Source of the DNA: Wallemia ichthyophaga EXF-994
Taxonomy: Eukaryota > Fungi > Basidiomycota
Assembly: GCF_000400465.1 (NCBI RefSeq)
Contig: NW_008806275.1
Coordinates: forward strand, 249,656-281,655
Direction of reading: 5' to 3'
DNA length: 32,000 nt
A model generated the notes under the pieces. That model saw nothing but the letters and a program-made list of their open reading frames with translations, was not told where the DNA came from and ran no database searches. The position numbers and the translations under genes are program-made. How positions within the stretch are numbered: the first letter of the stretch is position 1; each line of letters starts with the position of its first letter. This document shows, in pieces, positions 1-31,330 of the stretch.

Positions 1-115
1 TTCGGCTGCTGGCTCGCAACTTTCTTTCTAAAAGCCTGGGCTTGAGCTTGCAATGACCTATTAAGGGCATCAATAAACCAATTTAATATGTATCTCGTTG
101 CTGTTAGATTTACAT
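1..115 (-). CDS. 5' fragment of a gene running off the window, N-terminus MSLQAQAQAFRKKVASQQP; possibly TFIIE beta subunit
   Basis: Start codon split by a 56-nt intron: AT(115-114) | gtaaat...taatag (113-58) | G TCA TTG CAA..., open to the window edge. The peptide resembles, from memory, the N-terminus of fungal Tfa2. Only 19 codons are visible. Confidence 0.3.
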
Positions 116-412
116 TTCTGCCAAAGATGATGATAGTCGAGGTGAAAGGGAGATAAGGCAGGGGTGGTTGGTTGATTACTGGATAGATTTATTTGGTCTA
201 CAGAATTTGAGTAGATGTCAGATTATTGAGGCCAACATTCATCTCTTACTCATCCACAGCCTTTGTCTTCCTCCTCTACGGCCACCACTACCACCCACTC
301 ATCCAGTCAGAATCAAATTGAAATTGTCCGTGTGGTTATACAATACACATTTGTTAATTTAGAGAATCATTTTGTTCATTGGGATTTTAAGCGAGCGTGT
401 CCAACTGCTGTT

Positions 413-898
413 TCAATTGAAAAGACATGGATCGTATTTGCCAGAGGCGATAAACTTCTCCTTCTCCTCAGGAGTGTATCCACACTTGTCCTTTTGGACC
501 TGGCTTCCTTTCTCCTTGTTTCCACTTTCTGGCTCCTTTGGTGATTCTTTTTGATTTTCCTCTGGTTGCTTTGCTGGTGTTTCTTTTTTATTATCCTCTG
601 GCTGCTTGGATGGCTCAGATGATTCCTTGTTTTCATTACCTTCCTTCTTGCCTTCTTCTGGCTGCTTTGATTCGCCCTTGCTCTCCCCGTTGTTTGGGTA
701 GTTACCGGCACCCCAAAGGTCTTCGATCCACTGACCGCTTTGAATAGCTTTGTCAAGAGATCCGTTTTGGTCAGCACCACGCTTGACCTGGACATTGGTG
801 AGCACGCTTTTGCTTATTATTCAACATATACTCACCTCCATCTTGGCGGATGCGAGGACCGTTACTGCGAGAAGACCGACAATGTAAGTTAATTTCAT
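413..898 (-). CDS. Secreted Kex2-processed precursor 1 (about 145 aa), K/E/Q/P-rich
   Basis: Exon 1 898-836 (MKLTYIVGLLAVTVLASAKME, signal-peptide-like). Intron 835-788 (gtgagt...ctcac...ccag, 48 nt). Exon 2 787-413 is in frame with the ORF-track ORF and begins VKR|GADQ. Contains AIQSGQWIEDLWGAGNY, four [SAP]K[QE]PE[EDS]xxKE units and C-terminal FIASGKYDPCLFN. Confidence 0.8.
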
Positions 899-945
899 TG
901 CTCGATTGTAGTTGTAAGTAGAAGAGCAGTGGAAACTGATCTCCT

Positions 946-955
946 TTAAATAGCT
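946..955 (-). promoter_or_regulatory. TATA-like element AGCTATTTAA upstream of precursor gene 1
   Basis: Lies about 48 nt upstream of ATG 898. The identical 10-mer lies about 59 nt upstream of precursor gene 3 (5309-5318). Confidence 0.4.
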
Positions 956-1222
956 TAATATTTGGTAGATGCCGATTTTTTGTGGGATTTAATTTCCTTA
1001 GCCTTCCTTTTTTGGTTATCCGGCGAATTGAAGTATGTCTCACAAGACTAGATGCGTTCATACCTACCAGTATGGTAAGAGTTCTGCACAGCTGCGCCAC
1101 TGAGCAGTTGCTATTAAAGTTTAAGATAAGCTTTTAATAAAGTGTCTCTGCATCAATGTTTCAAAGGTAGCGTGAAAATATTAATGAAACGCAGTACGTT
1201 CTACAATGGTATGCGATGGTAT

Positions 1223-2651
1223 TTAGTGCTCTTCGTTGTGCATGTCTTTCTCGTCATGCTTGTTTTCCTTGTGGTCATCGTGCTCGTGTTTGTCGTCGTG
1301 GTGCTTGTGTTCACCTTTGTGTTCGCCCTTGTGGTTGATTGCCTCCTCGGAGTAGAGCTCTGGGTAGTACTCGCCGCTTGAATTGAGCTCTTTCTCCTCT
1401 TCGTGGGTCAAATGGTGGAAGTCAATGCGACCATCGTGCTGTACTGTGTGAGATAGTAAAGGTACTCAGACGCGCTACTAACCTCATCTCTGGTATGGAG
1501 AGATCTCTTGCCAGCGCCAAAACCTCTAGCACCAGCACCTCTGCTTTCGTGGTGTTTATGTTCATCGTGGCCGTGGTGCTTGTGTTCGCCCTTGTGGTTG
1601 ATAGCCTCCTCGGAGTAGAGCTCTGGGTAGTACTCGCCGCTTGAATTGAGCTCTTTCTCCTCATCGTGGGTCAAGTGGTGGAAGTCAATGCGACCATCGT
1701 GCTGTACTGTGTGAGATAGTAAAGGTACTCAGACGCGCTACTAACCTCATCTCTGGTATGGAGAGATCTCTTGCCAGCGCCAAAACCTCTAGCACCAGCA
1801 CCTCTGCTTTCGTGGTGTTTATGTTCATCGTGGCCGTGGTGCTTGTGTTCGCCCTTGTGGTTGATTGCCTCCTCAGAGTAGAGCTCTGGGTAGTACTCGC
1901 CGCTTGAATTGAGCTCTTTCTCCTCATCGTGGGTCAAGTGGTGGAAGTCAATGCGACCATCGTGCTGTACTGTGTGAGATAGTAAAGGTACTCAGACGCG
2001 CTACTAACCTCATCTCTGGTATGGAGAGATCTCTTGCCAGCGCCAAAACCTCTAGCACCAGCACCTCTGCTTTCGTGGTGTTTATGTTCATCGTGGCCGT
2101 GGTGCTTGTGTTCGCCCTTGTGGTTGATTGCCTCCTCAGAGTAGAGCTCTGGGTAGTACTCGCCGCTTGAATTGAGCTCTTTCTCCTCATCGTGGGTCAA
2201 GTGGTGGAAGTCAATGCGACCATCGTGCTGTACTGTGTGAGATAGTAAAGGTACTCAGACGCGCTACTAACCTCATCTCTGGTATGGAGAGATCTCTTGC
2301 CAGCGCCAAAACCTCTAGCACCAGCACCTCTGCTTTCGTGGTGTTTATGTTCATCGTGGCCGTGGTGCTTGTGTTCGCCCTTGTGGTTGATTGCCTCCTC
2401 AGAGTAGAGCTCTGGGTAGTACTCGCCGCTTGAATTGAGCTCTTTCTCCTCATCGTGGGTCAAGTGGTGGAAGTCAATGCGACCATCGTGCTGTACTGTG
2501 TGAGAGTCTAAAGACAAACAGCATAACAACCTACTTTATCTCTAACACGGAGAGCTCTCTTGCCGGCACCAAAACCTCTGACATCAAGAGGAGCAGCCGT
2601 AGAAACGGAGAGGACGGCAGCGACGACGAGGAGAGCGATTGATGATCTCAT
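1223..2651 (-). CDS. Secreted His-rich Kex2-processed repeat precursor 2 (about 402 aa, 6 exons)
   Basis: Exon 1 2651-2535 (MRSSIALLVVAAVLSVSTAAPLDVRGFGAGKRALRVRDK). Five 44-nt introns: 2534-2491, 2271-2228, 2008-1965, 1745-1702, 1482-1439. Four 219-nt exons each encode the same 73 aa (HDGRIDFHHLTHDEEKELNSSGEYYPELYSEEAINHKGEHKHHGHDEHKHHESRGAGARGFGAGKRSLHTRDE). Terminal exon 1438-1223. The repeat period 263 = 219 + 44, so splicing restores one open frame. Confidence 0.85.
1320..2505. repeat. Near-perfect tandem repeat, 263-bp unit, about 4.5 copies, each unit one exon plus one intron
   Basis: Identical 88-aa read-through ORFs end at 1408, 1671, 1934 and 2197 (period 263). Only a few substitutions separate the units, e.g. 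gatagcctcctcgga vs gattgcctcctcaga. Confidence 0.97.
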
Positions 2652-3037
2652 TGTTGCACGGTGTGTTGTGTTGTAGTATGAAAAGAAGCTTAAAATCCTA
2701 TTTAACTTGCTCGTGCATTCCCCACATTTTAGCGTCAAACTAATTTTTTTCATCTTCAAACATGCATGACTTGAGAGGTATGAATGTCTATCTACATCAT
2801 ATATTGTAGTCAGTTCATGAGATATCAATCAGTGAAAGTAAAGATCATATCGATTATGTCTTGAGGAATTCCAAACCGGTAGAGAACATTCTTAAGTTTA
2901 GAGAATAAAATTTATTAAGGATGCTTAGTACAAATACTCCAATTTAATTCAGTGTGTTGAGTGATCAAGAATGCGAGAAGAGACGAGTGAGAATTGAAGA
3001 AGTCAAGACATCTACCATTGTCCATAACCTATTAAGC

Positions 3038-5250
3038 TTATTGTTGTTGCTGCTGCTGAATTCTTTCCCGTTGGGTTTGGATAGATTGCTGGAGCTGCTC
3101 TTGCTGGTATTGTTGTTGCTCCTTCTCCCAAGCAGTTTCTCTCTTCCATTGAGCTTGACCTTGACCTTTGCCGTGTTCGTAGTTCTCTTCACCCCATAAG
3201 CATTCGAGGTATTGACCAGATTGGACAGCGTGTTCAATCTCTTCATGGCTCATGTGGCAGTGGTTATCGCCATGACCGCCTTTCTCGCCGTGACCATGCT
3301 CGCGACCATGTTCTTCACCGTGGCCGTGGTCGTGACCGTGACCATGCTTTTGCTCTTGCTCATGTCTCTTCCATTGACCTTGAACTTGACCTTGACCTTG
3401 AACTTGACCTTGACCTTGAACTTGACCTTGACCTTGAACTTGACCTTGACCTTGAACTTGACCTTGACCTTGAACTTGACCTTGACCTTGAACTTGACCT
3501 TGACCTTGAACTTGACCTTGACCTTGAACTTGACCTTGACCTTGAACTTGACCTTGACCTTGAACTTGACCTTGACCTTGAACTTGACCTTGACCTTGAA
3601 CTTGACCTTGACCTTGAACTTGACCTTGACCTTGAACTACCTTGCTCGTGACCATCGCCACGCTTGTGGTGATCATGGTGATCATCGCCTTGGTGAGCTT
3701 GCTGGTGTTCTTGTTGTTGGATACGTTCACGTTGGGTTTGGATAGATTGCTGGAGCTGCTCTTGCTGGTATTGTTGTTGCTCCTTCTCCCAAGCAGTTTC
3801 TCTCTTCCATTGAGCTTGACCTTGACCTTTGCCGTGTTCGTAGTTCTCTTCACCCCATAAGCATTCGAGGTATTGACCAGATTGGACAGCGTGTTCAATC
3901 TCTTCATGGCTCATGTGGCAGTGGTTATCGCCATGACCGCCTTTCTCACCGTGACCGTGTGTGTCACCATGCTCGCGACCGTGACCTTGCTCGTGACCAT
4001 CGCCACGCTTGTGGTGATCATGGTGATCATCGCCTTGGTGAGCTTGCTGGTGTTCTTGTTGTTGGATACGTTCACGTTGGGTTTGGATAGATTGCTGGAG
4101 CTGCTCTTGCTGGTATTGTTGTTGCTCCTTCTCCCAAGCAGTTTCTCTCTTCCATTGAGCTTGACCTTGACCTTTGCCGTGTTCGTAGTTCTCTTCACCC
4201 CATAAGCACTCGAGGTATTGACCAGATTGGACGGCGTGTTCAATCTCTTCATGGCTCATGTGGCAGTGGTTATCGCCATGACCGCCTTTCTCGCCGTGAC
4301 CATGCTCGCGACCATGTTCTTCACCGTGGCCGTAGTCGTGACCATGACCCTCAACTTGCTCGTGACCGTGACCACCGCCGCGTTTGTGGTGATCATGATG
4401 ATCATCGCCTTGGTGAGCTTGCTGTTGTTGCTGCTGCTGAATTCTTTCACGTTGGGTTTGGATAGATTGCTGGAGCTGCTCTTGCTGGTATTGTTGTTGC
4501 TCCTTCTCCCAAGCAGTTTCTCTCTTCCATTGAGCTTGACCTTGACCTTTGCCGTGTTCGTAGTTCTCTTCACCCCATAAGCATTCGAGGTATTGACCAG
4601 ATTGGACAGCGTGTTCAATCTCTTCATGGCTCATGTGGCAGTGGTTATCGCCATGACCGCCTTTCTCACCGTGACCGTGTTTGTCACCATGCTCGCGACC
4701 GTGGCCTTGCTCGTGTCTGTGCTCTTCACCGTGGCCATTTCCCTGTCCGAATCCTGAGCGTCTACCGTGCTCGCGATCCTCTTGCTCCTTCTTGTGCTCA
4801 ACGACGGCGTGCTTCTTTGCTTCAAAGTCATCTTGACGCTTGTGGTGGCCTTCGTGACCGCCGTGGACATCGGCTGCAGTGATTCTGTGACCGTGACCAT
4901 CTTCACCACCATGTGGACCAGCTGGTGATCCAATAGGGCCTCCGTGGCCGTGGAAAGGTGCCTTATTGCCCTGCTATAAGCGTGTTAGATGGTTGTGCAG
5001 ATAGTAAGACACCACCCACCATTTCGCCGTGGCCGTGTTGCTGCTCTTCGTGACGCTTTCCTTTAGCGCCCTTTGAAGGTGCAGCTTTGGTTGCTTTTCC
5101 GCCGCCTTTACCCATGTTCTCCATGCCTTGGAGTCCCTTGGTGAGCGGGTCGGTGACTTTCTGGATGAGGCCGCGTTGCTCAAGTGGAGCAGCTGTGGAG
5201 GCTGAGAGAATAGATGCGACGAGAGCGATGAGTGTGATTGAGAACCTCAT
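3038..5250 (-). CDS. Secreted His/Gln/Gly-rich Kex2-processed repeat precursor 3; frameshift at about 3638
   Basis: Exon 1 5250-5020 (MRFSITLIALVASILSASTAAPLEQR...KGKR|HEEQQHGHGEM). Intron 5019-4974 (gtgggt...ctaac...tag). Exon 2 from 4973 is in frame with ORF 3360..4634. Four copies of HCHMSHEEIEHAVQSGQYLECLWGEENYEHGKGQGQAQWKR|ETAWEKEQQQ...; the fourth lies in another frame (stop at 3038). As sequenced it gives about 614 aa ending in an RS tail (stop 3360), or about 720 aa if the frame is restored. Confidence 0.8.
3040..4700. repeat. Four long coding repeat units (about 345-375 bp) within precursor 3
   Basis: Homologous positions at 4627, 4252, 3907 and 3246 (spacings 375, 345, 661). The 661 spacing is not a multiple of 3 and includes the minisatellite. 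Confidence 0.95.
3374..3637. repeat. 18-nt minisatellite (GTTCAAGGTCAAGGTCAA on the minus strand), about 15 copies, encoding VQGQGQ
   Basis: gaac recurs every 18 nt from 3382-3385 to 3634-3637 (252 nt = 14 periods). The array is perfect. Confidence 0.98.
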
Positions 5251-8055: not shown

Positions 8056-9936
8056 TCACAACACAACGGGCCGTTCAACCTCTTTAAGCCACTCATCCCA
8101 TGCTCTACCTGGGCCTTCTGTGATGATAGACAATTTTCCATTCAGCCACCTATGTACGCGCTCTTGGTCGTGTTTTTCCGCGTCCTCATCGAGTACACTC
8201 AAGTCGCCGTGCTCGCCATGCAGAGAAAGGATGGACCACCCGACGACAATCATCCCAGGAGGGCGTTGATCGCCAGCGCCTTCATAAGCCTTAACTATCC
8301 CGTCCAGTGTGCTCATCACGACGCGCTGCGACGGTGACGAAGCCTGCTCGATTACAGCTACGGGTACGAAAGGCGGGTAACTGAGCTGAGCGAGGCTTTC
8401 GACCAGCTCCCGCAATCTCGCTACGCCCATGAGGATAGTCAGTGTGCGAGCGCGCGCGTATTCCGGCACACTCAGCACCCGACCTCCTCTTCCGACGCCC
8501 GTGCACAGCAGAAACGAGTCAGAAGCCCCGCGCTGTGTCACCGGTATGCCACCCATAAGCGGCGCCGCCATGGCGGACGAAAGGCCGGGTACTACCACTG
8601 CCTCGTAGCCTTCGCGACGGAAATGAATCACTTCCTCTCCTCCTCGCCCGTAGACGAATGGGTCGCCCTGCTTTACTGCTGAATGTTAGTAGGTGGCTTT
8701 GGATGCAATTGGGATGGTACACTCACACCGCACTACGACTTGGCCAGATCGAGCTCCGTCAACGGCCCACTGCATGAGCTCCGCCTGGGCTCCCTCAGCA
8801 TTACCTGGAAATTTGCGTGCGATGCGCACCTCTGTCGACTGCGGAACTACCTTGAGCACAGCTGCGGGGACAAGCTTGTCGGAGAGAACTAGGTCGGCTG
8901 TCTTGAGTGCGCGGTAGGCAGCTATTGTGAGAAGCTCTGGCGAGCCAAGACCTGCGCCTACGAGTACAATGTGGCCTTTGCGCGGTTTGGGTGATTGAGG
9001 GGGTGCTAGTGATAGCGCGTGTCTATCGTGTGGAGGTGGAAGGGGCCACTGAGGGACAAATTCCGTCTTGGGAGTGCGCGGCTGGTGAGGCTCCCCGTAA
9101 GCGTCAAGTAAACTGTCTATATCAGCCTCATCCATCTTGGCGAGATGTTCAAGTGGCCAGTACTCAGAAATCTGTGCGACCCAGCGCATTCTCCGCAGAG
9201 CTTTATCGGAGGCATGTTCAGTGGTATTATCCCGACTCAACTGAGGCACGGCTGCGTTGAGATTGTCGAAATCAGCCAATTCTTCACTCAGACTGGATTG
9301 CGACGTTGTTCGCTCGAGTTTCATCCGGGAGAGGTATCGCTTGGCACGGGAACGGAGGAGACCAATGTTGTGTACAGCTGAGCCAATATTTTTAGGGAGG
9401 AGAGCAATAGTCTCGCGCTTAATACGAGAAGCGAGTCTGCAGCCCTTGGAGTTTGTTGTAACGGCGAGCTGGAGCGGAGAAGGAGAGCCATCAGGGAGGC
9501 TGAATCTGTGCGAAGTAGGAAAAGAGAAGTCACAGAGAAGAGGATGATCGGTTACGTTGATTGGGATGTTGAGTGAGTGTGATAACTGGACGAGTGAGTG
9601 GATTGAAGGTGAATTGTCGTGGCTATCGTTGATGCCACAGTCCGTTATAGTGGCTATAGTGGTGGATGTGCGTGTACAGCAGCTTCTAAAGGCCGCCTCA
9701 AGCTGAGAATGGCTTGTGGCTGTTAAATACTCAATTTGATCAGCAGAAACACGAAATTTGATCTCATCGCAGGCAGAATCTAATCCACAGCCAATCACAA
9801 CGACGTTACATCCAGCGTCTAATCCAGCGAAAGATCTCGACGCAGCCAATGAGTTGTGACCGATGACAATGAGAGATTTATTGGTAGAATTGAGTGCGAT
9901 TAAGAGAGATCCATGGCCAGCGGGTGATTTGTACAT
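8056..9936 (-). CDS. MET1: Uroporphyrin-III C-methyltransferase / siroheme synthase
   Basis: Motifs LAVTTNSKGCRLASRIKRE, GHIVLVGAGLGSPELLTIAA, ADLVLSDKLV, VVR|LKQGDPFVYGRGGEE (one intron at about 8727-8665) and VVPGLSSAMAAP. Confidence 0.92.
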
Positions 9937-10033
9937 GCCCAAGTACAGCAATTTGATGATGAACGTTGGTGATCAACCGACAGCCACAGCCATTACCTTA
10001 TCTTCGAACCACCAAGGCTCATTCAACAAGGAA

Positions 10034-15152: not shown

Positions 15153-17256
15153 ATGGGCAGGAAATCAAGTAATAAAATAACCAAATGTAATCTCAGCCTT
15201 TTCTAACACGCTACACAGAGCAGAAGCAACAGGATCCAGTCCCTCACCAGCCTAGACAAGCTCACGGCACACGAGTCACAAAGAGGAAGGCAAAAGACGC
15301 TGCACTTGACACCTCAAATAAGAAATCAAAGCAGGTGAACCAGGCCAAGCAGCCAAGAAAACCAAAGCAACCTTCTTCTTCTCCTTCGATCCACTCTGAG
15401 GATGAGCAAGATGAGCAAGATGCCTCTGATGATGCCTCCGAAGCCTCCGAATCAGCCTCCGATAACCTCCAGGACTTACAAGGCTCTGATGATGACGACG
15501 AATTTGATCTCGACGCCAGTGACGCTGATGCTCCTCAAAATCCTCCCCAGCAACTCGTCTTCTCTGATCAAGATGATAGCGAGGATGGCTCACAAGACTC
15601 AGACGCAGATTCAGACTCAGACGAGCAATCTGATGTTCAAGGCGCTGAGCCTAGAAGAGAGAAACTCTCCGCCAAAAAATCCAAAAAATTGGATCAAGAA
15701 GCCCTCCTTGAAGCTGCAGACGCAGAAGCAGAAATGATTAGAACTAACATTGCTGGTCTCGAGCCTAACGAGATGGGTGAGGTCGATGATGATATGGTTC
15801 TCCCCACTCAAGAGGATAAGGAGAGAGAGGCTACTGAGGGTGCTGACGCCCAAACCGTTTACGGTCGTATAGGCGATATTGTCCGCATTCTAGGCGACTT
15901 TCATCGCTTTAAGGCTGCTAACAGGAGCAGAGCTGATTACACTGATCAGCTTGTTGCTGATATTGCTAGTTACTATGGCTACACTCCGTTCCTCGCTGAG
16001 AAACTTTTCTCCATGTTCAGTCCTGATGAAGTGAGTAGAGAGTTGTGCATTCGTATCACCTCTCACTCCCTTCTCTCCAGTCTATTGCCTTTTTTGACGC
16101 TAACGAAACTCCACGTCCTGTTACCATTAGAGCTAACACCCTTAAAACCCGCAGGAGGGATCTCGCCCAAGCACTCATTAACAGAGGTGTCTCTCTAGAG
16201 CCAATCGGTAAATGGACCAAAGTTGGTCTACAGATATTCGACTCTAGTGTTCCTGTCGGTGCAACGCCAGAGTATTTGGCTGGTCACTACATGCTCCAAT
16301 CTCCATCATCATTCCTTCCCGTTATGGCACTCGATCCGAAAACAAATGAGCGTGTACTTGACATGGCTAGTGCTCCAGGTGGTAAAACAAGCTACATGTC
16401 CGCTTTGATGCAGAACACGGGTGTCGTTTTCGCCAATGATGCCAACGCTTCAAGGACCAAGAGTCTTAGTGCGAATGTGCACAGGCTTGGCTGCAAGAAT
16501 GTAGTCGTCTGCAGCTACGATGGTAGACAATTCCCCAAGGTTATTGGAGGGTTTGATAGGGTGTGAGTTGGATGGTTGTGTGTTGACGTATTATTCTGAC
16601 GCTTTTCTAGATTGTTAGATGCACCATGCAGTGGTACGGGTGTCGTATCTAAAGACCAGTCGGTAAAGGTGAACAAGGTGAGTGAATGTCTTGAAGATAG
16701 AAGCAAGCTAAAAAGACCCCAGACTGAACGCGACTTTGCACTACTCTCGCATCTTCAGAAACAACTTATTCTCTGTGCGATAGACTCTATTAACACAAAA
16801 TCATCAACTGGCGGATACGTAGTGTATTCGACGTGTTCAGTGACGGTAGAGGAGGATGAGGGAGTGGTAGATTACGCGCTGAAAAAGAGACCAAATGTGA
16901 AACTTGTTCATACTGGGCTCGAATTCGGTGTAGAGGGATTCACAAACATTGGCGGAAAGAAGTTCCATAAGGATATGCACCTCACTAGGCGCTTCTATCC
17001 ACACGTGCACAACATGGAAGGATTCTTTGTGTCCAAGCTGCACGTACTGCCGAGAGCCGTAGTGAAGAACAAGCTGGCGCAGCAGGAGAAGAATGACGCT
17101 GACGATACTGGAGTTCTCGTTGATGACGATGAGGATGAAAAGGAAGCGGGAGATGTCACCTTCAATGATGATGAGGATAAGCAGTTGATGCAGAAAAATC
17201 AACGCCGCCAACAGAAAGCGAAGGGTATTAAGCCATCTAAGCCAACAACCAAGTAA
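15153..17256 (+). CDS. NOP2: 25S rRNA (cytosine-C5) methyltransferase Nop2
   Basis: Starts MGRKS|KQKQQDP, followed by an acidic N-terminal region, YYGYTPFLAEKL, PVTIRANTLKTRRRDLAQAL, ERVLDMASAPGGKT, FDRV|LLDAPCSGTG and VYSTCSV. About four introns. Confidence 0.96.
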
Positions 17257-17466: not shown

Positions 17467-19586
17467 ATGCTTAGATTGAGAAATATCCGCGGCTGTGGGT
17501 TTTAAAGGGAAACACAGATATAAACCTCTTACATAACTCAGCGCCGCTTTCTAGACGTGCTTTCTCGACTTCGGCCGTTGTTTCGAGAGTTGTGGCCACC
17601 GACCCAGTCAAGGCGAAGCACGCAGAGAACAATGTGAGTGCTGTGGCCGGAATTGCTGTAAAATAGCTCACGCTGCCATTCGAGGGATTTGCTGCTTCCA
17701 ACTACCCAGTAATCGATCATGAATACGATGCAGTCGTCGTCGGTGCCGGCGGTTCTGGTCTTCGTGCCGCTTTCGGTTTGGCAGAGGCTGGCCACAAGAC
17801 AGCTTGTATCACTAAGCTGTTCCCAACGCGCTCGCATACTGTCGCTGCTCAGGTAACGTTACTTGATGCACGCCACACCCATCTCACTTAAAGACAGGGC
17901 GGTATCAACGCTGCACTTGGCAATATGACAAAGGACGACTGGAGATGGCACATGTACGATACTGTGAGTGGTATTAACGCGTTTTAGCCCGTTTTCCCCA
18001 CTCACATCCGATAGGTCAAAGGCTCTGATTGGCTCGGTGACCAAGACGCAATCCATTACATGTGTCGTGAAGCGCCACGCACCGTCGTCGAGCTGGAGCA
18101 CTACGGTGTTCCTTTCTCTCGTACCGCCGATGGAAAAATCTACCAGCGTGCATTTGGTGGTCAATCACTTGAGTACGGTAAGGGTGGCCAGGCGTACAGG
18201 TGTGCAGCTGCTGCAGACCGTACTGGGCACGCTCTCTTGCACACGCTCTACGGTCAATCACTTCGCCACGACACAAACTTCTTCATCGAATATTTTGCAC
18301 TCGACTTGATCATGGAAGATGGCGAGTGTGTCGGTGTAATGGCGCTCAATATGGAGGATGGCACTCTGCATCGTTTCAGATCACACAACACGGTTCTCGC
18401 TACCGGTGGTTACGGTCGCTCATACTTCTCGTGCACCTCTGCACACACCTGCACAGGTGATGGTAATGCGATGGTTTCTAGAGCTGGCTTGCCGCTCCAG
18501 GATCTTGAGTTTGTGCAGTTCCACCCTACTGGTATTTATGGTGCGGGCTGTCTCATCACGGAGGGATCACGTGGTGAGGGTGGTTACCTTCTCAACTCTG
18601 AGGGTGAAAGATTCATGGAACGTTACGCACCAACTGCAAAAGATTTGGCTTCACGTGATGTCGTCTCTCGTTCGATGACGATAGAAATACGTGAAGGAAG
18701 AGGTGTGGGTCCGGAGAAGGACCACTGTTACCTCCAACTGTCTCACTTGCCACCTGATGTGTTGCACGAGCGACTTCCAGGTATTTCAGAGACAGCAGCC
18801 ATCTTCTCTGGTGTAGATGTCACCAAAGAGCCAATCCCAGTATTGCCAACGGTGCACTACAACATGGGTGGTATACCAACGAAATGGACAGGAGAGGTTT
18901 TGTCAATCGATGAGCAAGGCAAGGACAAGGTGGTACCTGGATTGTATGCGGCAGGAGAAGCAGCTTGTGTATCTGTCCACGGAGCCAACAGATTGGGAGC
19001 CAACTCACTCCTTGATATCGTTGTGTTCGGTAGGGCGTGCGCTAACCACATTCGTGACAACAACGAAGCTGGAAAGCCACACAAGAAGATTAGCGAAAAT
19101 GCCGGGATGGGTAGTATAGAGAATCTTGACAAGGTGCGCAACTCTACTGGTCCAAAATCTACAGCGGATATACGTCTTGATATGCAGAAGGTTATGCAAT
19201 CAGACGCAGCTGTATTCAGAACCGATCAGAGTTTGCAAGAGGGAGTGGAGAAGATGAAGAAGGTTTACGACTCGTATGCTCAAATTGGATTGAGCGATAG
19301 AAGCATGATATGGAACACAGACTTGGTGGAGAGCCTCGAATTGACAAATTTGCTCCAGTGCGCTATGCAGACTATCGTGGCTGCTGCTAATCGTAAAGAG
19401 AGCCGTGGTGCTCATGCAAGAGAGGACTTTAGCGAGCGCGATGATGAAAAGTGGATGAAACACACACTCACATTCCAGCCAGACGTAGAGAGCAATAACG
19501 TTGATCTTACGTACAGGGCTGTTGAGGGCGAGACGCTGGATGAAAGTGAGTGCAAGTCGGTACCGCCATTCCAGCGTTCATACTAG
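17467..19586 (+). CDS. SDH1: Succinate dehydrogenase flavoprotein subunit, mitochondrial
   Basis: Presequence MLRLRNIRG..., [19 protein letters not shown], the FAD-attachment motif [10 protein letters not shown]|[26 protein letters not shown] and [13 protein letters not shown]. Four 5' introns. Confidence 0.98.
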
Positions 19587-24345: not shown

Positions 24346-25242
24346 TTATTTCGACGGCGATGGATCGACGGGTGAACCAAATTCAGTAGTCTTGTTGTCA
24401 ATACCACGGCGAATGTGGTCGTCGTCGAGGTGATCGAGACGGTGCAGTTCGCTGCGAGTGTAATGCACGAGGCTGTTGAGGTGGATAGGGATAGCGACTT
24501 CCATAGCCTCGCCATGTACGCCCTCTTCCTCCCTAACGGCTCTACCAGAAGGGGACAACTCCATGTCACCCGAGTCAATCTCCTCCTTGACGCCTCTACC
24601 TGAGTAGATATTCCTCCAGAACGCAGCAGCGAGTACAGCATCACCGCGGACGAGTCCCTCGTCATACGCCACACCTGAACCACGCCACATATCCAAATAA
24701 GCCATCATGTAACCTCTAACAGTGCGCTCCTGGGTGATTTTAAACTTGTGACGAATACGCGATTCAATGTCGATGAAAAAGTGATTAATGAGCTCCTGTA
24801 TATAGAGACGTGCGAGTGGTTCTGGGAGAGCTCTGAACCTGACGGTAAGCAACCAAATGTGGAGGTTAGTGAGGTGGAACCACGTGTTGAAGGTGGGCGG
24901 GAGGTTAGCAGTTTTAAGGAATTCACCGTGGCCTTCTTCCCACTCGGCACACCTATCGTAGTAGTCGGAGGTGGTGCGTATTGCGGTGGAGGTGTCGCTG
25001 TTGTATCCAAATAACTTGGCTATGGAGAAGACGATTTTCTTGGTTAGTTCGGAATGCTGCTTGGGCGGGCGTGCCTTTGGTGAGAGCGGGGTGGCGGAAA
25101 GGAGAGGTTTCTTGTGCGGTGGCTGTGGCTGCGACTGCGAGTGGTTCGACTGAGTGGATAACAAACTCCTAGTGGGATTGCGGGCTATGGCGCGTACAAT
25201 ACACCGCTGGTTCGCTTTAATAGCATTCGTTATTAGTGGCAT
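24346..25242 (-). CDS. CBP3: Ubiquinol-cytochrome c reductase chaperone Cbp3/UQCC1
   Basis: Presequence-like start MPLITNAIKANQR; LPPTFNTWFHLTNLHIWLLTVRFRAL, QELINHFFIDIE and YDEGLVRGDAVLAAAFWRN. No introns. Confidence 0.9.
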   Translation of the reverse strand: MPLITNAIKANQRCIVRAIARNPTRSLLSTQSNHSQSQPQPPHKKPLLSATPLSPKARPPKQHSELTKKIVFSIAKLFGYNSDTSTAIRTTSDYYDRCAEWEEGHGEFLKTANLPPTFNTWFHLTNLHIWLLTVRFRALPEPLARLYIQELINHFFIDIESRIRHKFKITQERTVRGYMMAYLDMWRGSGVAYDEGLVRGDAVLAAAFWRNIYSGRGVKEEIDSGDMELSPSGRAVREEEGVHGEAMEVAIPIHLNSLVHYTRSELHRLDHLDDDHIRRGIDNKTTEFGSPVDPSPSK

Positions 25243-25290
25243 GGTGGTTGTGGTGCTAGAGCCATTCGTCTTCTCTTCTCGCTCCGGACA

Positions 25291-25911
25291 ATGACGACGA
25301 CTAGGCAACTCGACCAGGAAGAGGTGATCCTCGCAGGCAGATTGAATGAAGTGGATCAAGTGGTTGAGGCCATCGATGAATTTGGAATCCACGCACTCCT
25401 CACCGCCAGAGACGACAGAAGCAACTCAATTCTGCACATGTTATCAGCGAATAATCATTTAGAGCTGCTCAAGAGGGTTATCGGTGGCTGTGGTGGATGT
25501 AAGGACGCACTCGCTGCCACTCTCCTCCATCAAAATCAGTCAAAATCCACAGCACTTCATTGGGCAGCTACAAATGGGAACAAAGAGCTGGCTATTTACT
25601 TGTGTGAACAGGCAAGGGATGTGGGTGACGACACAGAGCACAAACTCACTTTCTCCACAAACCAATCTGGGCTCAGTGCTGCTTCTGAAGCTGAGAGAGG
25701 TGGTCATGACGATTTGGTGGTCGAGTTGCTCGCCCGGATGGATGCACTCGATAAGGGAAGCAGAGGTGGTGACGGTGAGGGTGCTGAGGGCGCACAGGAG
25801 CCACTCTCTCAACCTGAAGACTCGCAACCTGAAAACCCACAAGAAGACGTGGTTGTACAAGTAGGCGATACATCCACAATCACAAATAAAGTGGATGAAA
25901 TAAACCTGTAA
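25291..25911 (+). CDS. Ankyrin-repeat protein, Yar1-like
   Basis: EVILAGRLNEVD, NSILHMLSANNHLELL and NQSKSTALHWAATNGNKELAIYL ankyrin repeats, with an acidic tail. Confidence 0.8.
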   Translation: MTTTRQLDQEEVILAGRLNEVDQVVEAIDEFGIHALLTARDDRSNSILHMLSANNHLELLKRVIGGCGGCKDALAATLLHQNQSKSTALHWAATNGNKELAIYLCEQARDVGDDTEHKLTFSTNQSGLSAASEAERGGHDDLVVELLARMDALDKGSRGGDGEGAEGAQEPLSQPEDSQPENPQEDVVVQVGDTSTITNKVDEINL

Positions 25912-28287: not shown

Positions 28288-29163
28288 ATGACGAGTCCAT
28301 ACTGGAAATTCTTTCAGCGCACCATTGATCAACTAGCGCAGCGGTCAAAAATAAGTGGGTGGAATTAGTGCACAAGCTTGTACGATTCTCACACGTCCAC
28401 AGTCGCCAACGCCTCACCAACACCGACGACGCCCCCAATACGTCTAGCCACGCTGAGGAGCAGCTCCGATATCTCCAACTGGGCTGTTGGCTGCGATGGT
28501 GATATGGGCGGGCGCAGTCGGGCGCAGCTTGAATACGTGGGCGGTGTGAATGTGAGTGGGGGCGAGGAGAAGCATGCGAAATTCAGTGGCGTTCTCGATC
28601 CATACGTCCCCGAACAATGGAAGAAAACTCTCGAGGATGGCGTTAAGGCTAAGAGCGGTTATGCTGGTCTGCGCACTAAAACTCGCACTACACTCTTCGG
28701 TACAGCGTGTTGGGACCTGTCGCTGCACCCGTACCTCGCTATGCGTGTTAGGAATAACATGGCTAAAGGTGGAGGTGCAAGTAGTGGTAGTGTTAGCAAC
28801 AGCAGCGGCTACTTTATCAACATTCAGACAGAAGGCGCTGTACGCAGCGATCTGTTTCAGCATCGCCTCTTCACTCCCCCTAACTCTCACTGGCATACCC
28901 TTGTCGTTCCCCTTAGCTCATTTGTCCTCACTAACGCGGGTGAGACTTCGGATCAGCAACTGCCTATGCTCAGAGAGAAAATTCGCACCGTCGGTATCAG
29001 TCTCCTCGCTAATCCTGATGGTAATAGCACAGGTAGAGTTGAAAATAGCGAACGCTTTGATCTCGATATCGAATGGATTGAGGCGTGGAACGATAGCAAT
29101 CCAGATGTTGTAGCTAGACAGAGTCAAGATGGTAATGATAGTGAGAAGAAGGAAAGTCTATAA
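28288..29163 (+). CDS. CIA30: Complex I intermediate-associated protein 30 (NDUFAF1 family)
   Basis: Exon 1 MTSPYWKFFQRTIDQLAQRSKI plus an intron (gtgggt...ctcac...cag). Then WAVGCDGDMGGRS, KSGYAGLRT, YFINIQTE, DLFQHRLF, VVPLSSFVLTNAG and IRTVGISL. Confidence 0.85.
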
Positions 29164-29307: not shown

Positions 29308-31330
29308 CTATATTTCTCTCTGAAAAGCTCTAAAAATGTCTTGATACGAAGGTGCAGCGTGGTGATGCGATTGCGATTGATTCTGCGACTGTGACTGCAA
29401 CTGACTCACACCCCCAACCCCACTCTTACCACTCTCATACAGGTAGTCGTTGATGAGTTTCTTGGTTCCGTCGGTGATATGCGTCTCGTCCAACCCATTG
29501 CTGAGGTTTGTAACACTGTCGATGGTATCTGGCAGCGCGTGTGTGTAAGGCTGGACGCTGCTGGCTGATGAGAAGGTGGATGTAGATGTCGACGAGCAGC
29601 TCGAGCCTAATCCCGCCCCAACAATCACTCCATGACTGCTTGATTCCTGCGTTGTTCCCGGCAGTGCTTCCATATAACTGAACATCTGTGCCTCTGTTTC
29701 TGCTTCTGCCTTGGGTATGTCGATAGGTACACTCTGGGTATGTTGTGAAGGGATATCGCCGAAGACCTGGTTGATGTAGTTGAAATTGTCGTTGTGATAG
29801 TAGGTATCGCCAATATCGCCAATGCCACCAGCACCACTACCGTCAACACCCTCACTGCCATCTACATCCCCCAACACCATATCGAAATCGAAATCCATCC
29901 TTGCGTCACCCAAGTCGTCACCATACCCATGCCGCGTGAAATCAAGACCATATTCAAGACATGTGTTGTCTATAGCAGCCCATTCGTTAGCCAGATTTGC
30001 CGCTGTTGCCGGTGCGAGCATTACCGCTGGATCGTAAGCCAGATTGGAGAGTGAGGAGGCTTGCGGGTTTGCGTCTGAGTTTGACACGTCTAGTGCGGAA
30101 TCTGACACCCATCCACTCCCACTCCCATTCCCACTCACTTCCTTCTCTTCCATATTGATGTAGTGGTCCATTTCCAGTCGCAGGTAGGGCGGTATGGCGG
30201 ACATGTACATGTCTTCTGGGTGTGTTGGGTGCGCGTAGTGCTTGCACTGCGTGTAGCTGCTCGATGGCTCTGACTGTAAGAATGAGGGTGGTGATGACAG
30301 TGACTGTGAGTACGAGTGTGGATATGAACGTGAAGACGCCGATGCTGTGTCGCTGAATGTGAATGCTGGTAGCTGATTCTCACTCTCATCTATTTCTCGC
30401 TTCACTTGTGCCTCGTCAAAGCTGAGATCAACCGCGAGAGTATTACCAGCGTGTAAGGTTGTTTTCTTGTCATCCTCATGGTTTCTGCTCGCCTCCTCTC
30501 TCCTTCTAAGGCTGTTTCTACTTTTGGTTTGTGCGTTCGCTCTCCCGCGGCGTTGGCCGATGTAGCTAGTGTCCTGTTCGTTGTCGCTGTCATTCTTCTC
30601 ATACATTTCCGTTTCCATCTCCTTTTCGCGCGCCACTTCTGCTTCTTGTTTCTCCCTAATAAGCTCCTCCAGCTCTCTGTGCGCGTCTGTCTCTTTCCTA
30701 CGTGCGCTCTGCGCACCCCGCCCGCTCTTCACCGGCCGCTGTCCCCTCGCGGCGGACTTGGAGCGCACACCTCCACTCTCTTTCCTGCGCGGCTTGTATT
30801 GGTATTCGGGATACATGAGCTTATGCTCCCGCTTCACCTGCTCAGATTTGGCGAGGTAGTGCTCGCGCACCTCCTCCGTCTCATTCAGCCAGCGCGCAGA
30901 CAGATTTTTCGACAACTCCGTCTGTGACTCCCTCAGACACTGTGCCGGCTTCGCGGCCGCTTGCTCCTGTCTGTCGCAGTCGTGAGGTGTGACGTGTGCG
31001 TGTTGACATTTGCTACTCACTTGATCTTCGCTAGACTTTCCGACCGGTAGAGTATCCATGCACTGGTTGGGTGTGAGGCGATGCCGTGTGGTGCGCTGCT
31101 GCTCCAACTCACTTGGCTGGACGCGGCACTTTGGATTTGTTTCTTGATCTCGATTTCTTCGCCGGTTGTGGTGGGTTGATGTGGCTGTGGATGTGGATGT
31201 GTTTCGGATTCTCATTCTGACTCTGCCTCTGATCCAAAGACCCAACACAGATGAACTGTACATCTCCCTCCTTTATTTCGCTCATCTCGCTCATCGGTTT
31301 ATATTCTGAGACCTGTTCGCTTTCGAACAT
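29308..31330 (-). CDS. MATA-type HMG-box transcription factor
   Basis: ATG 31330. Two 50-nt-scale introns give KVPRPAN|AWILYRSESLAKIK|QEQ...QTELSKNLSARWLNETEEVREHYLAKSEQVKREHKLMYPEYQYKPRRK, a canonical HMG box, followed by a long low-complexity C-terminus. Confidence 0.9.

Follow-up and report, generated by a model that had tools for sequence, protein, structure and literature searches.

Kex2-processed repeat proteins (KEPs), such as the alpha-factor precursors and Rep1 of Ustilago maydis, are secreted fungal precursors with a signal peptide and no membrane segment, in which near-identical tandem units are split by KR or RR sites (PMC6339444). By the operational definition, a KEP has a signal peptide and no transmembrane segment, cuts at KR or RR give at least four fragments of which at least three are similar, and the repeats make up at least 15% of the protein (PMC6339444). 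A survey of these proteins, in which peptides with conservation limited to one genus were left out of consideration, counts Wallemia ichthyophaga and W. sebi among the KEP-rich species (Le Marquer et al. 2019, PMC6339444). In a window of 32,000 nucleotides from the halophilic basidiomycete W. ichthyophaga EXF-994 (RefSeq assembly GCF_000400465.1, contig NW_008806275.1, positions 249,656 to 281,655 of the forward strand), which is the whole stretch of DNA analysed here, three neighbouring genes, named g1, g2 and g3, were found to share an undescribed small module of about 30 residues that is absent from current databases. Their products constitute an orphan family of secreted repeat proteins of the Kex2 type that is confined to the genus. 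Two other protein groups are relevant to this locus. The Pra1/Zps1 zincophore family comprises secreted fungal metal-scavenging proteins with His-rich tails. Hydrophilins, whose criteria are attributed to Garay-Arroyo et al. (2000), are reportedly defined by a Gly content above 6% and a hydrophilicity index above 1.

All three genes lie on the minus strand, have short fungal introns and encode two, five and four copies of the module, respectively. In the order g3-g2-g1 they form a tandem cluster adjoining the gene for TFIIE-beta, which is located downstream of the cluster. The same cluster adjoins TFIIE-beta on contigs of three relatives, here L005, L001 and L006, whose TFIIE-beta identities are ~94%, 87% and ~60%, respectively; L006, the most distant, is an AT-rich ENA metagenome scaffold (GC 31%). 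The genes are as follows, in window coordinates:

413..898, minus strand: g1 gene, 145 residues, secreted; exon 1 at 898-836, 48-nt intron at 835-788, exon 2 at 787-413
1223..2651, minus strand: g2 gene, 402 residues, secreted; five 73-residue units, each ending in GFGAGKR
2534-2491, 2271-2228, 2008-1965, 1745-1702 and 1482-1439, minus strand: the five g2 introns, 44 nt each, one per repeat
3038..5250, minus strand: g3 gene, His/Gly/Gln-rich, secreted; 46-nt intron at 5019-4974

The g1 model is identical in sequence to the 'uncharacterized protein' EOR04010.1 / XP_009266227.1 in GenBank (P0011). It consists of a signal peptide, a conserved 'MEVKR' Kex2-type propeptide and a disordered linker rich in Lys, Glu and Pro, with one module at each end of the linker. 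In several W. ichthyophaga strain annotations (P0004, P0010, P0012; GenBank TIA67891.1 and others) a 426-residue model fuses g1 to the downstream TFIIE-beta and loses the C-terminal module after 'EEKEK'; this fusion is likely a gene-model error. The g3 gene corresponds to GME559_g, annotated with 710 residues (Zajc et al. 2013, PMC3849046), and was the only one of the three found in the accessible part of the supplements of that paper, which were searched by GenBank identifiers and neighbouring GME identifiers. A literature search for the locus tags or for a His-rich Wallemia protein found no mention of either. The units of g3 measure 345-375 bp. Each contains a single module and, behind it, a Gln-rich helix, and the segments are separated by KR sites. 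By inspection, the products of g1, g2 and g3 have a signal peptide and no transmembrane segment, with N-termini MKLTYIVGLLAVTVLASA, MRSSIALLVVAAVLSVSTA and MRFSITLIALVASILSASTA, respectively, and polar sequence thereafter.

The module copies encoded in the window, with their scores against a profile hidden Markov model (HMM) of the module, are:

698..751, minus strand: g1 N-terminal module, KAIQSGQWIEDLWGAGNY; version without Cys, 67 bits, kept in L005, L001 and L006
416..484 (motif at 416-460), minus strand: g1 C-terminal module, CGYTPEEKEKFIASGKYDPCLFN; version with a Cys pair, 52 bits
2395-2448, 2132-2185, 1869-1922, 1606-1659 and 1343-1396 (span 1343..2448), minus strand: five g2 modules, EKELNSSGEYYPELYSEE, 68-80 bits each
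4560-4616, 4185-4241, 3840-3896 and 3179-3235 (span 3179..4616), minus strand: four g3 modules with the core CHMSHEEIEHAVQSGQYLECLWGEENY, 71-72 bits each

A preliminary description of this DNA, made from the letters alone, had proposed that a shared motif links the three genes, and the motif is indeed a true homologous element. All 11 copies that it listed are present on the minus strand, and they score 52-80 bits with the profile HMM, compared with 6 bits for the best background match in the window. The proposed pattern, E-x(4,5)-SG[QEK][YW]xxxL[WYF], retrieves 10 of the 11 copies and nothing else in the six reading frames of the 32-kb window, but misses the g1 N-terminal copy, which has Asp in place of Glu. 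The variable spacing after the first residue is superfluous, as an alignment anchored on the Gly is gapless for all versions. The g1 and g3 versions were said to match at 11 of 17 residues; the 11 identities are there, but the compared length is 18, which gives 11/18. The synonymous codon differences between these two versions (AGC/TCT for Ser, CAG/CAA for Gln and CTT/TTA for Leu) are as described. The DNA identity among the module copies within g2 and within g3 is 95-100%, and since these copies are near-identical tandem DNA repeats, the window holds four independent versions (g1 N-terminal, g1 C-terminal, g2 and g3) rather than 11. What counts as independent evidence is thus the four paralogue types together with the orthologues of four relatives.

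Fourteen distinct sequences from five genomes, anchored on the Gly, align without gaps over the ~30 residues of the module. Taking this invariant Gly as position 0, there is Tyr or Trp at +2, Leu or Ile at +6 and Trp, Phe or Tyr at +7; position -3 is usually Ile or Val, -1 is usually Ser, and Tyr or Ile occupies +12. Positions -14 and +5 either both carry Cys (g3 and the g1 C-terminal copy) or both lack it (the other two paralogue types), and all four g2 sequences have His/Glu there. Outside the module the proteins evolve fast and are very hydrophilic, with an abundance of His, Asp, Glu, Lys and Gly. In the comparison of W. ichthyophaga with L005 the rate of nonsynonymous substitution (dN) was 0.067-0.11 in the module and 0.22-0.33 in the rest, with a synonymous rate (dS) of 0.5-1.9, and the flanks were indel-rich (15-92 gap columns). 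The g1 C-terminal module compared with that of L001 gave a dN of 0.069 with dS saturated. Within W. ichthyophaga, all the g1 variants fall outside both modules, one in the signal peptide and the others in the linker. Selection on the peptide, first suggested from the codon differences, is thus supported by a dN three to four times lower in the motif than in its surroundings, indicating stronger purifying selection, and orthologues in L005, L001 and L006 conserve the motif. It is the conserved core of the module, the only strongly constrained part of these proteins.

AlphaFold models predicted the module as a helix, a turn at the Gly and a short second helix, with disordered linkers. In g3 the helix-turn-helix reached a predicted local distance difference test (pLDDT) score of ~76 and was followed by a very confident 45-residue Gln-rich helix; in g1 the C-terminal copy reached ~88 and the N-terminal copy ~55, as did the disordered linker (~55). 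The idea that the motif is the sole hydrophobic island of these chains does not hold for g3, where a long Gln-rich helix containing Trp and Tyr follows each copy. A Pfam scan of the proteins gave nothing above noise, searches of PDB sequences with phmmer and with the profile gave a best E of 0.56, which is noise, and a Foldseek search of the PDB with the model of the g3 unit gave 0 matches. Together with the exhaustive profile search described next, these results agree with the initial impression that the motif is not a named domain.

An exhaustive HMMER profile search, with a cut-off of E<1e-3, covered 1.84 billion representative proteins and returned nine matches. Six are of the Wallemia type, being homologues of g1, g2 and g3 whose sources are strains of W. 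ichthyophaga, Logan assemblies and ENA metagenomes, and the other three are prokaryotic look-alikes. No low-complexity proteins were pulled in, a specificity that the preliminary description had left to be checked. Word-indexed searches for homologues of g1 and for matches to the module profile agreed, giving a handful of proteins only. When a 152-residue g3 unit was used as a homology query it did not match even itself, with a composition filter as the probable cause. Since g3 itself was missing from the exhaustive matches and the search with its unit was empty, a lack of matches says less about the members rich in His and Gln than about g1 and g2. As far as these sequence searches reach, the module family is restricted to W. 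ichthyophaga and its close relatives.

Two of the look-alikes are built of tandem repeats of 24 residues; one comes from the metagenome-assembled genome (MAG) of a DPANN archaeon and the other from an ENA metagenome. The third is a bacterial secreted protein with two copies of TPEELHEAVQSGQTIEEL. None of the look-alikes belongs to a Pfam family. The 24-residue repeat, L-T-P-E-Q-I-D-K-A-I-D-K-G-x-x-L-D-x-L-Y, was found in the archaeal protein HRT03588.1 (P0006) and in the metagenome proteins P0008 and P0021. These are large proteins with up to ~25 such repeats in tandem, and the repeat seems to be a separate helical type that has not been described before. The repeat matched the module with an hhalign probability of 93.8% over 21 columns and a profile E of 2.5e-10 summed over eight stretches, and shares with it an N-cap S/T-P-E-E/Q, an Ile/Ala-Ile, the Gly and a hydrophobic-x-x-Leu-aromatic pattern. 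However, the archaeal units are arranged head to tail, as in a helical solenoid, and lack the disordered linkers, the signal peptide and the Cys pair of the module proteins. Horizontal transfer from an archaeal repeat was considered and found unsupported, since 21 columns of generic helix-Gly-helix are too few to demonstrate common descent. The match could be a convergence on a common helix-turn-helix design, and the resemblance indicates that the fungal module follows this helix-Gly-helix design, with the same positions as hydrophobic contacts.

Compared with KEPs, the products of g2 and g3 share the signal peptide, the lack of a membrane segment and the near-identical tandem units split by KR or RR. 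The operational definition takes in g2, with five GKR-ended units, and g3, with three to four units and two KR sites each, but leaves out g1, which has one KR and two divergent modules. The word 'precursors', applied earlier to all three proteins, is thus apt for g2 and g3 but not for g1, and even g2 (and g3 in one relative) is single-unit in the relatives. Other differences from KEPs are the length of the Wallemia units, 47-73 residues with a predicted folded module, whereas the commonest class in Dikarya has 9-24 residues (PMC6339444), the presence in the family of g1, which is not a repeat protein, the single units of the relatives, and an intron in each g2 repeat. Putative Kex2 sites are conserved: 'VKR/TKR-G' follows the signal peptide in four of four g1 orthologues, three KR sites are common to the g3 of W. 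ichthyophaga and L005, and the RGFGAGKR junction before the first g2 unit recurs in each g2 repeat.

The gene content of the cluster differs among the relatives. L005 has a single unit in g2 and a single unit in g3. In L001 (positions 1-5000 of a Logan contig) g2 is also single-unit, and the contig holds only the 3' end of g3. L006 (1043-2542) has two near-identical g3 units separated by RR, lacks g2 between g3 and g1, and its g1 has no C-terminal module and ends in 'GLWNEDKYGWKNY' instead. The L001 contig has neither the g1 and g2 introns nor any of the four introns of the L005 TFIIE-beta gene, yet it contains intergenic sequence; it probably derives from cDNA, as merged spliced transcripts from a compact genome. 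If so, it would document the splice junctions directly and show that the cluster is expressed in that species.

The tandem repeat in g2 has a period of 263 bp and 4.5 copies at 99% identity (window 1317-2505, minus strand). Its period is not a multiple of three because there is a 44-nt intron inside each copy. L005 g2 has a 44-nt intron at the same place and L001 is exactly spliced there, indicating that the 263-bp repeat is an amplified exon-plus-intron unit; five copies of this whole unit, Kex2 site included, were produced by the amplification. The tandem repeats of g3 (345-375 bp) are 95-99% identical. As the relatives are mostly single-unit, the repeats of g2 and g3 are recent amplifications and the polyprotein layout is a recent derived state; whole-unit amplification was recent in W. 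ichthyophaga and, for g3, independent in the L006 lineage. The g3 gene includes a further repeat:

3374..3638, minus strand: (GGTCAAGGTCAAGTTCAA)n microsatellite, i.e. (GQGQVQ)n, in g3; 14.7 copies, 100% identity

At the upstream edge of this microsatellite (window 3360-3660) the g3 reading frame shifts by one base. Past the shift, the frame of copies 1-3 reads (SSRSRS)n and reaches a stop at 3360-3362, and the fourth module, which is intact but in the other frame, joins copies 1-3 only if the frame change is bridged. The published 710-residue model implies the removal of 34 nt at the microsatellite (PMC3849046), an 'intron' shorter than every other intron seen in these genes. Possible causes of the frame change are an error in the sequencing, a frameshift of very recent date and unusual splicing.

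The reading we favour, to which we give a probability of roughly one half, is that the module forms the folded core in a group of extracellular proteins that are processed by Kex2, hydrophilin-like and probably metal-binding. Kex2 in the secretory pathway would release each unit at the KR sites, as their conservation across orthologues suggests, and unit amplification would raise the dose of a mature product that the relatives make from single-unit genes. The products would be extracellular or cell-wall hydrophilin-like proteins whose His/Asp/Glu tails could bind metal cations and water, while the hairpin, the one folded element, may mediate association with itself or with a wall partner. Such a role would fit the xerophilic and halophilic life of Wallemia.

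The composition of the proteins is consistent with this proposal. The mature products of g1, g2 and g3 have a grand average of hydropathy (GRAVY) of -1.63 to -1.85, 11-17% Gly and a pI of 4.8-6.0, and by GRAVY and Gly content all three lie within the hydrophilin thresholds; His makes up 14-18% of g2 and g3 and is absent from W. ichthyophaga g1. Expression of g3 (GME559_g) rose from 10.5 to 25.0 reads per kilobase per million (RPKM) between 10% and 30% NaCl, a 2.4-fold change (log2 1.26; PMC3849046). In a comparison of composition only, the Wallemia proteins resemble hydrophilins and His-rich dehydrins of the late embryogenesis abundant (LEA) type in hydrophilicity, Gly above 6%, predicted disorder, His tracts (HKGEHKHH) and, for g3 alone and at a low absolute level, a rise in expression at low water activity, but they are secreted rather than cytosolic, show no sequence homology to them and have the conserved hairpin instead of K-segments. 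The Wallemia proteins are like the Pra1/Zps1 family in being secreted and in having His-rich segments, which could bind Zn, Cu or Ni; however, they have no Pfam match and their conserved part is a hairpin, not a metalloprotease-like domain.

Several points weigh against the favoured reading. W. ichthyophaga g1, linker included, has no His, which means that metal binding cannot extend to every member of the family. In the g2 orthologue of L005 there is no KR before the unit. The expression of g3 is low in absolute terms (RPKM 10-25), and neither g1 nor g2 is among the differentially expressed genes in the part of the lists for PMC3849046 that could be consulted. The copy number of g2 and g3 comes from one assembly, and annotations of other strains give single-unit g2 models, which may reflect collapsed repeats. 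The alignments behind the AlphaFold models were shallow (3-7 sequences). Finally, the hydrophobic moments of the predicted helices were no higher than those of shuffled sequences, and therefore give no support for an amphipathic interface.

The proposal can be taken further, with the module as a new autonomous alpha-hairpin mini-domain, stapled by a disulfide or a metal, that defines a xerophile-specific class of secreted hydrophilin-like/metal-binding proteins, and with its expansion in the most halophilic species as an adaptation near salt saturation, for instance a thick cell wall that holds water and cations. In this full form we consider it unlikely.

The other genes identified by Pfam in the window are mostly housekeeping genes (siroheme synthase, Pil1-like, Cbp3, NOP2, succinate dehydrogenase, short-chain dehydrogenase and CIA30), together with regulators of the Zn-cluster and HMG-box types. 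Those with mapped positions are:

8056-9951, minus strand: siroheme synthase gene, divided among two or more open reading frames (ORFs), presumably by an intron; domains NAD-binding, Sirohm_synth and TP_methylase
16045-17256: NOP2-type methyltransferase
18060-19586: succinate dehydrogenase flavoprotein
24346-25392: Cbp3
28378-29163: CIA30
29308-31263, minus strand: long ORF with an HMG-box (Pfam E 2e-5)

The loss of sexual reproduction has been reported for W. ichthyophaga (PMC3849046), the species in which this HMG-box ORF occurs.

Among the alternatives, a signalling function, in which the hairpin is the element recognised by a receptor, draws on the fact that g2 and g3 fall under the operational definition of KEPs and that the motif is the only strongly constrained part of the proteins. 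Nevertheless, three paralogous types with quite different flanks coexist, the units have considerable length and a high charge, g1 does not belong to the repeat proteins, and no receptor or pheromone-pathway gene was found linked to the cluster among the neighbouring ORFs scanned, all of which makes this function rather improbable.

A second alternative places the metal site in the module itself, where positions -14/+5 with nearby His and Glu would act as a metal staple in g2, whereas in g3 and in the C-terminal copy of g1 the staple would be a disulfide. The residues at these positions, Cys/Cys in the latter two and His/Glu in the four g2 sequences, agree with it, as do additional His at -13 and -10 in g2 and g3. 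We regard it as quite doubtful, given that the g1 N-terminal copy, whose residue at -14 is Gly or Arg and whose module lacks His, still retains the core.

The units could also be His-rich antimicrobial peptides of the histatin kind, directed at competitors in brines or dry foods, with the multi-copy precursors of g2 and g3, secreted and 14-18% His, raising the dose. This is hard to reconcile with a net charge that is acidic to neutral (pI 4.8-6.0), unlike that of cationic antimicrobial peptides, with the lack of an amphipathic helix signal and with a W. ichthyophaga g1 devoid of His, and we consider it very unlikely.

The preliminary description had also proposed that the motif might be a bioactive core or a Tyr/Trp crosslinking site. 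Under this view the proteins would be precursors of crosslinked peptides made by ribosomes and modified post-translationally (RiPPs), of the ustiloxin/dikaritin type, with the aromatic motif as the Tyr/Trp-crosslinked core. The signal peptide, the KR-bounded repeat units and the conserved Tyr/Trp of the motif are features expected of such precursors, and Tyr-rich KEPs are often paired with DUF3328 genes (PMC7329392). However, Pfam detected no DUF3328 (UstYa), tyrosinase, P450 or other peptide-tailoring family in the 20 largest ORFs of the 27 kb upstream, a scan that small or heavily spliced genes may escape. The neighbours are housekeeping genes upstream and TFIIE-beta downstream, and the lack of tailoring genes among the ORFs scanned nearby speaks against a natural product of the crosslinked-peptide kind. 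With 47-73 residues from one dibasic site to the next, the fragments are far above the length of such cores, the motif is predicted to fold as a helix-turn-helix, and the relatives have single copies. A core of this kind was therefore rejected on gene neighbourhood and unit length, and we see hardly any chance for it. A functionless resemblance by chance or low complexity among repetitive genes, for which one could cite the recent origin of most of the 11 copies as DNA repeats, can be dismissed in view of four paralogue types and 14 distinct sequences from five genomes in a gapless alignment, a motif dN 3-4 times below that of the flanks, and a profile that drew zero low-complexity proteins among 1.84 billion.

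If the function of these proteins turned out to be unrelated to salt or dryness, they would be one more lineage-specific secreted orphan family. The g2 gene illustrates cleanly how a polyprotein can be built by tandem amplification of an exon together with its intron. With a conserved folded module, at least one salt-responsive member and amplification of the units in the most extreme species, the cluster is a concrete candidate for the extracellular side of the adaptation to low water activity.

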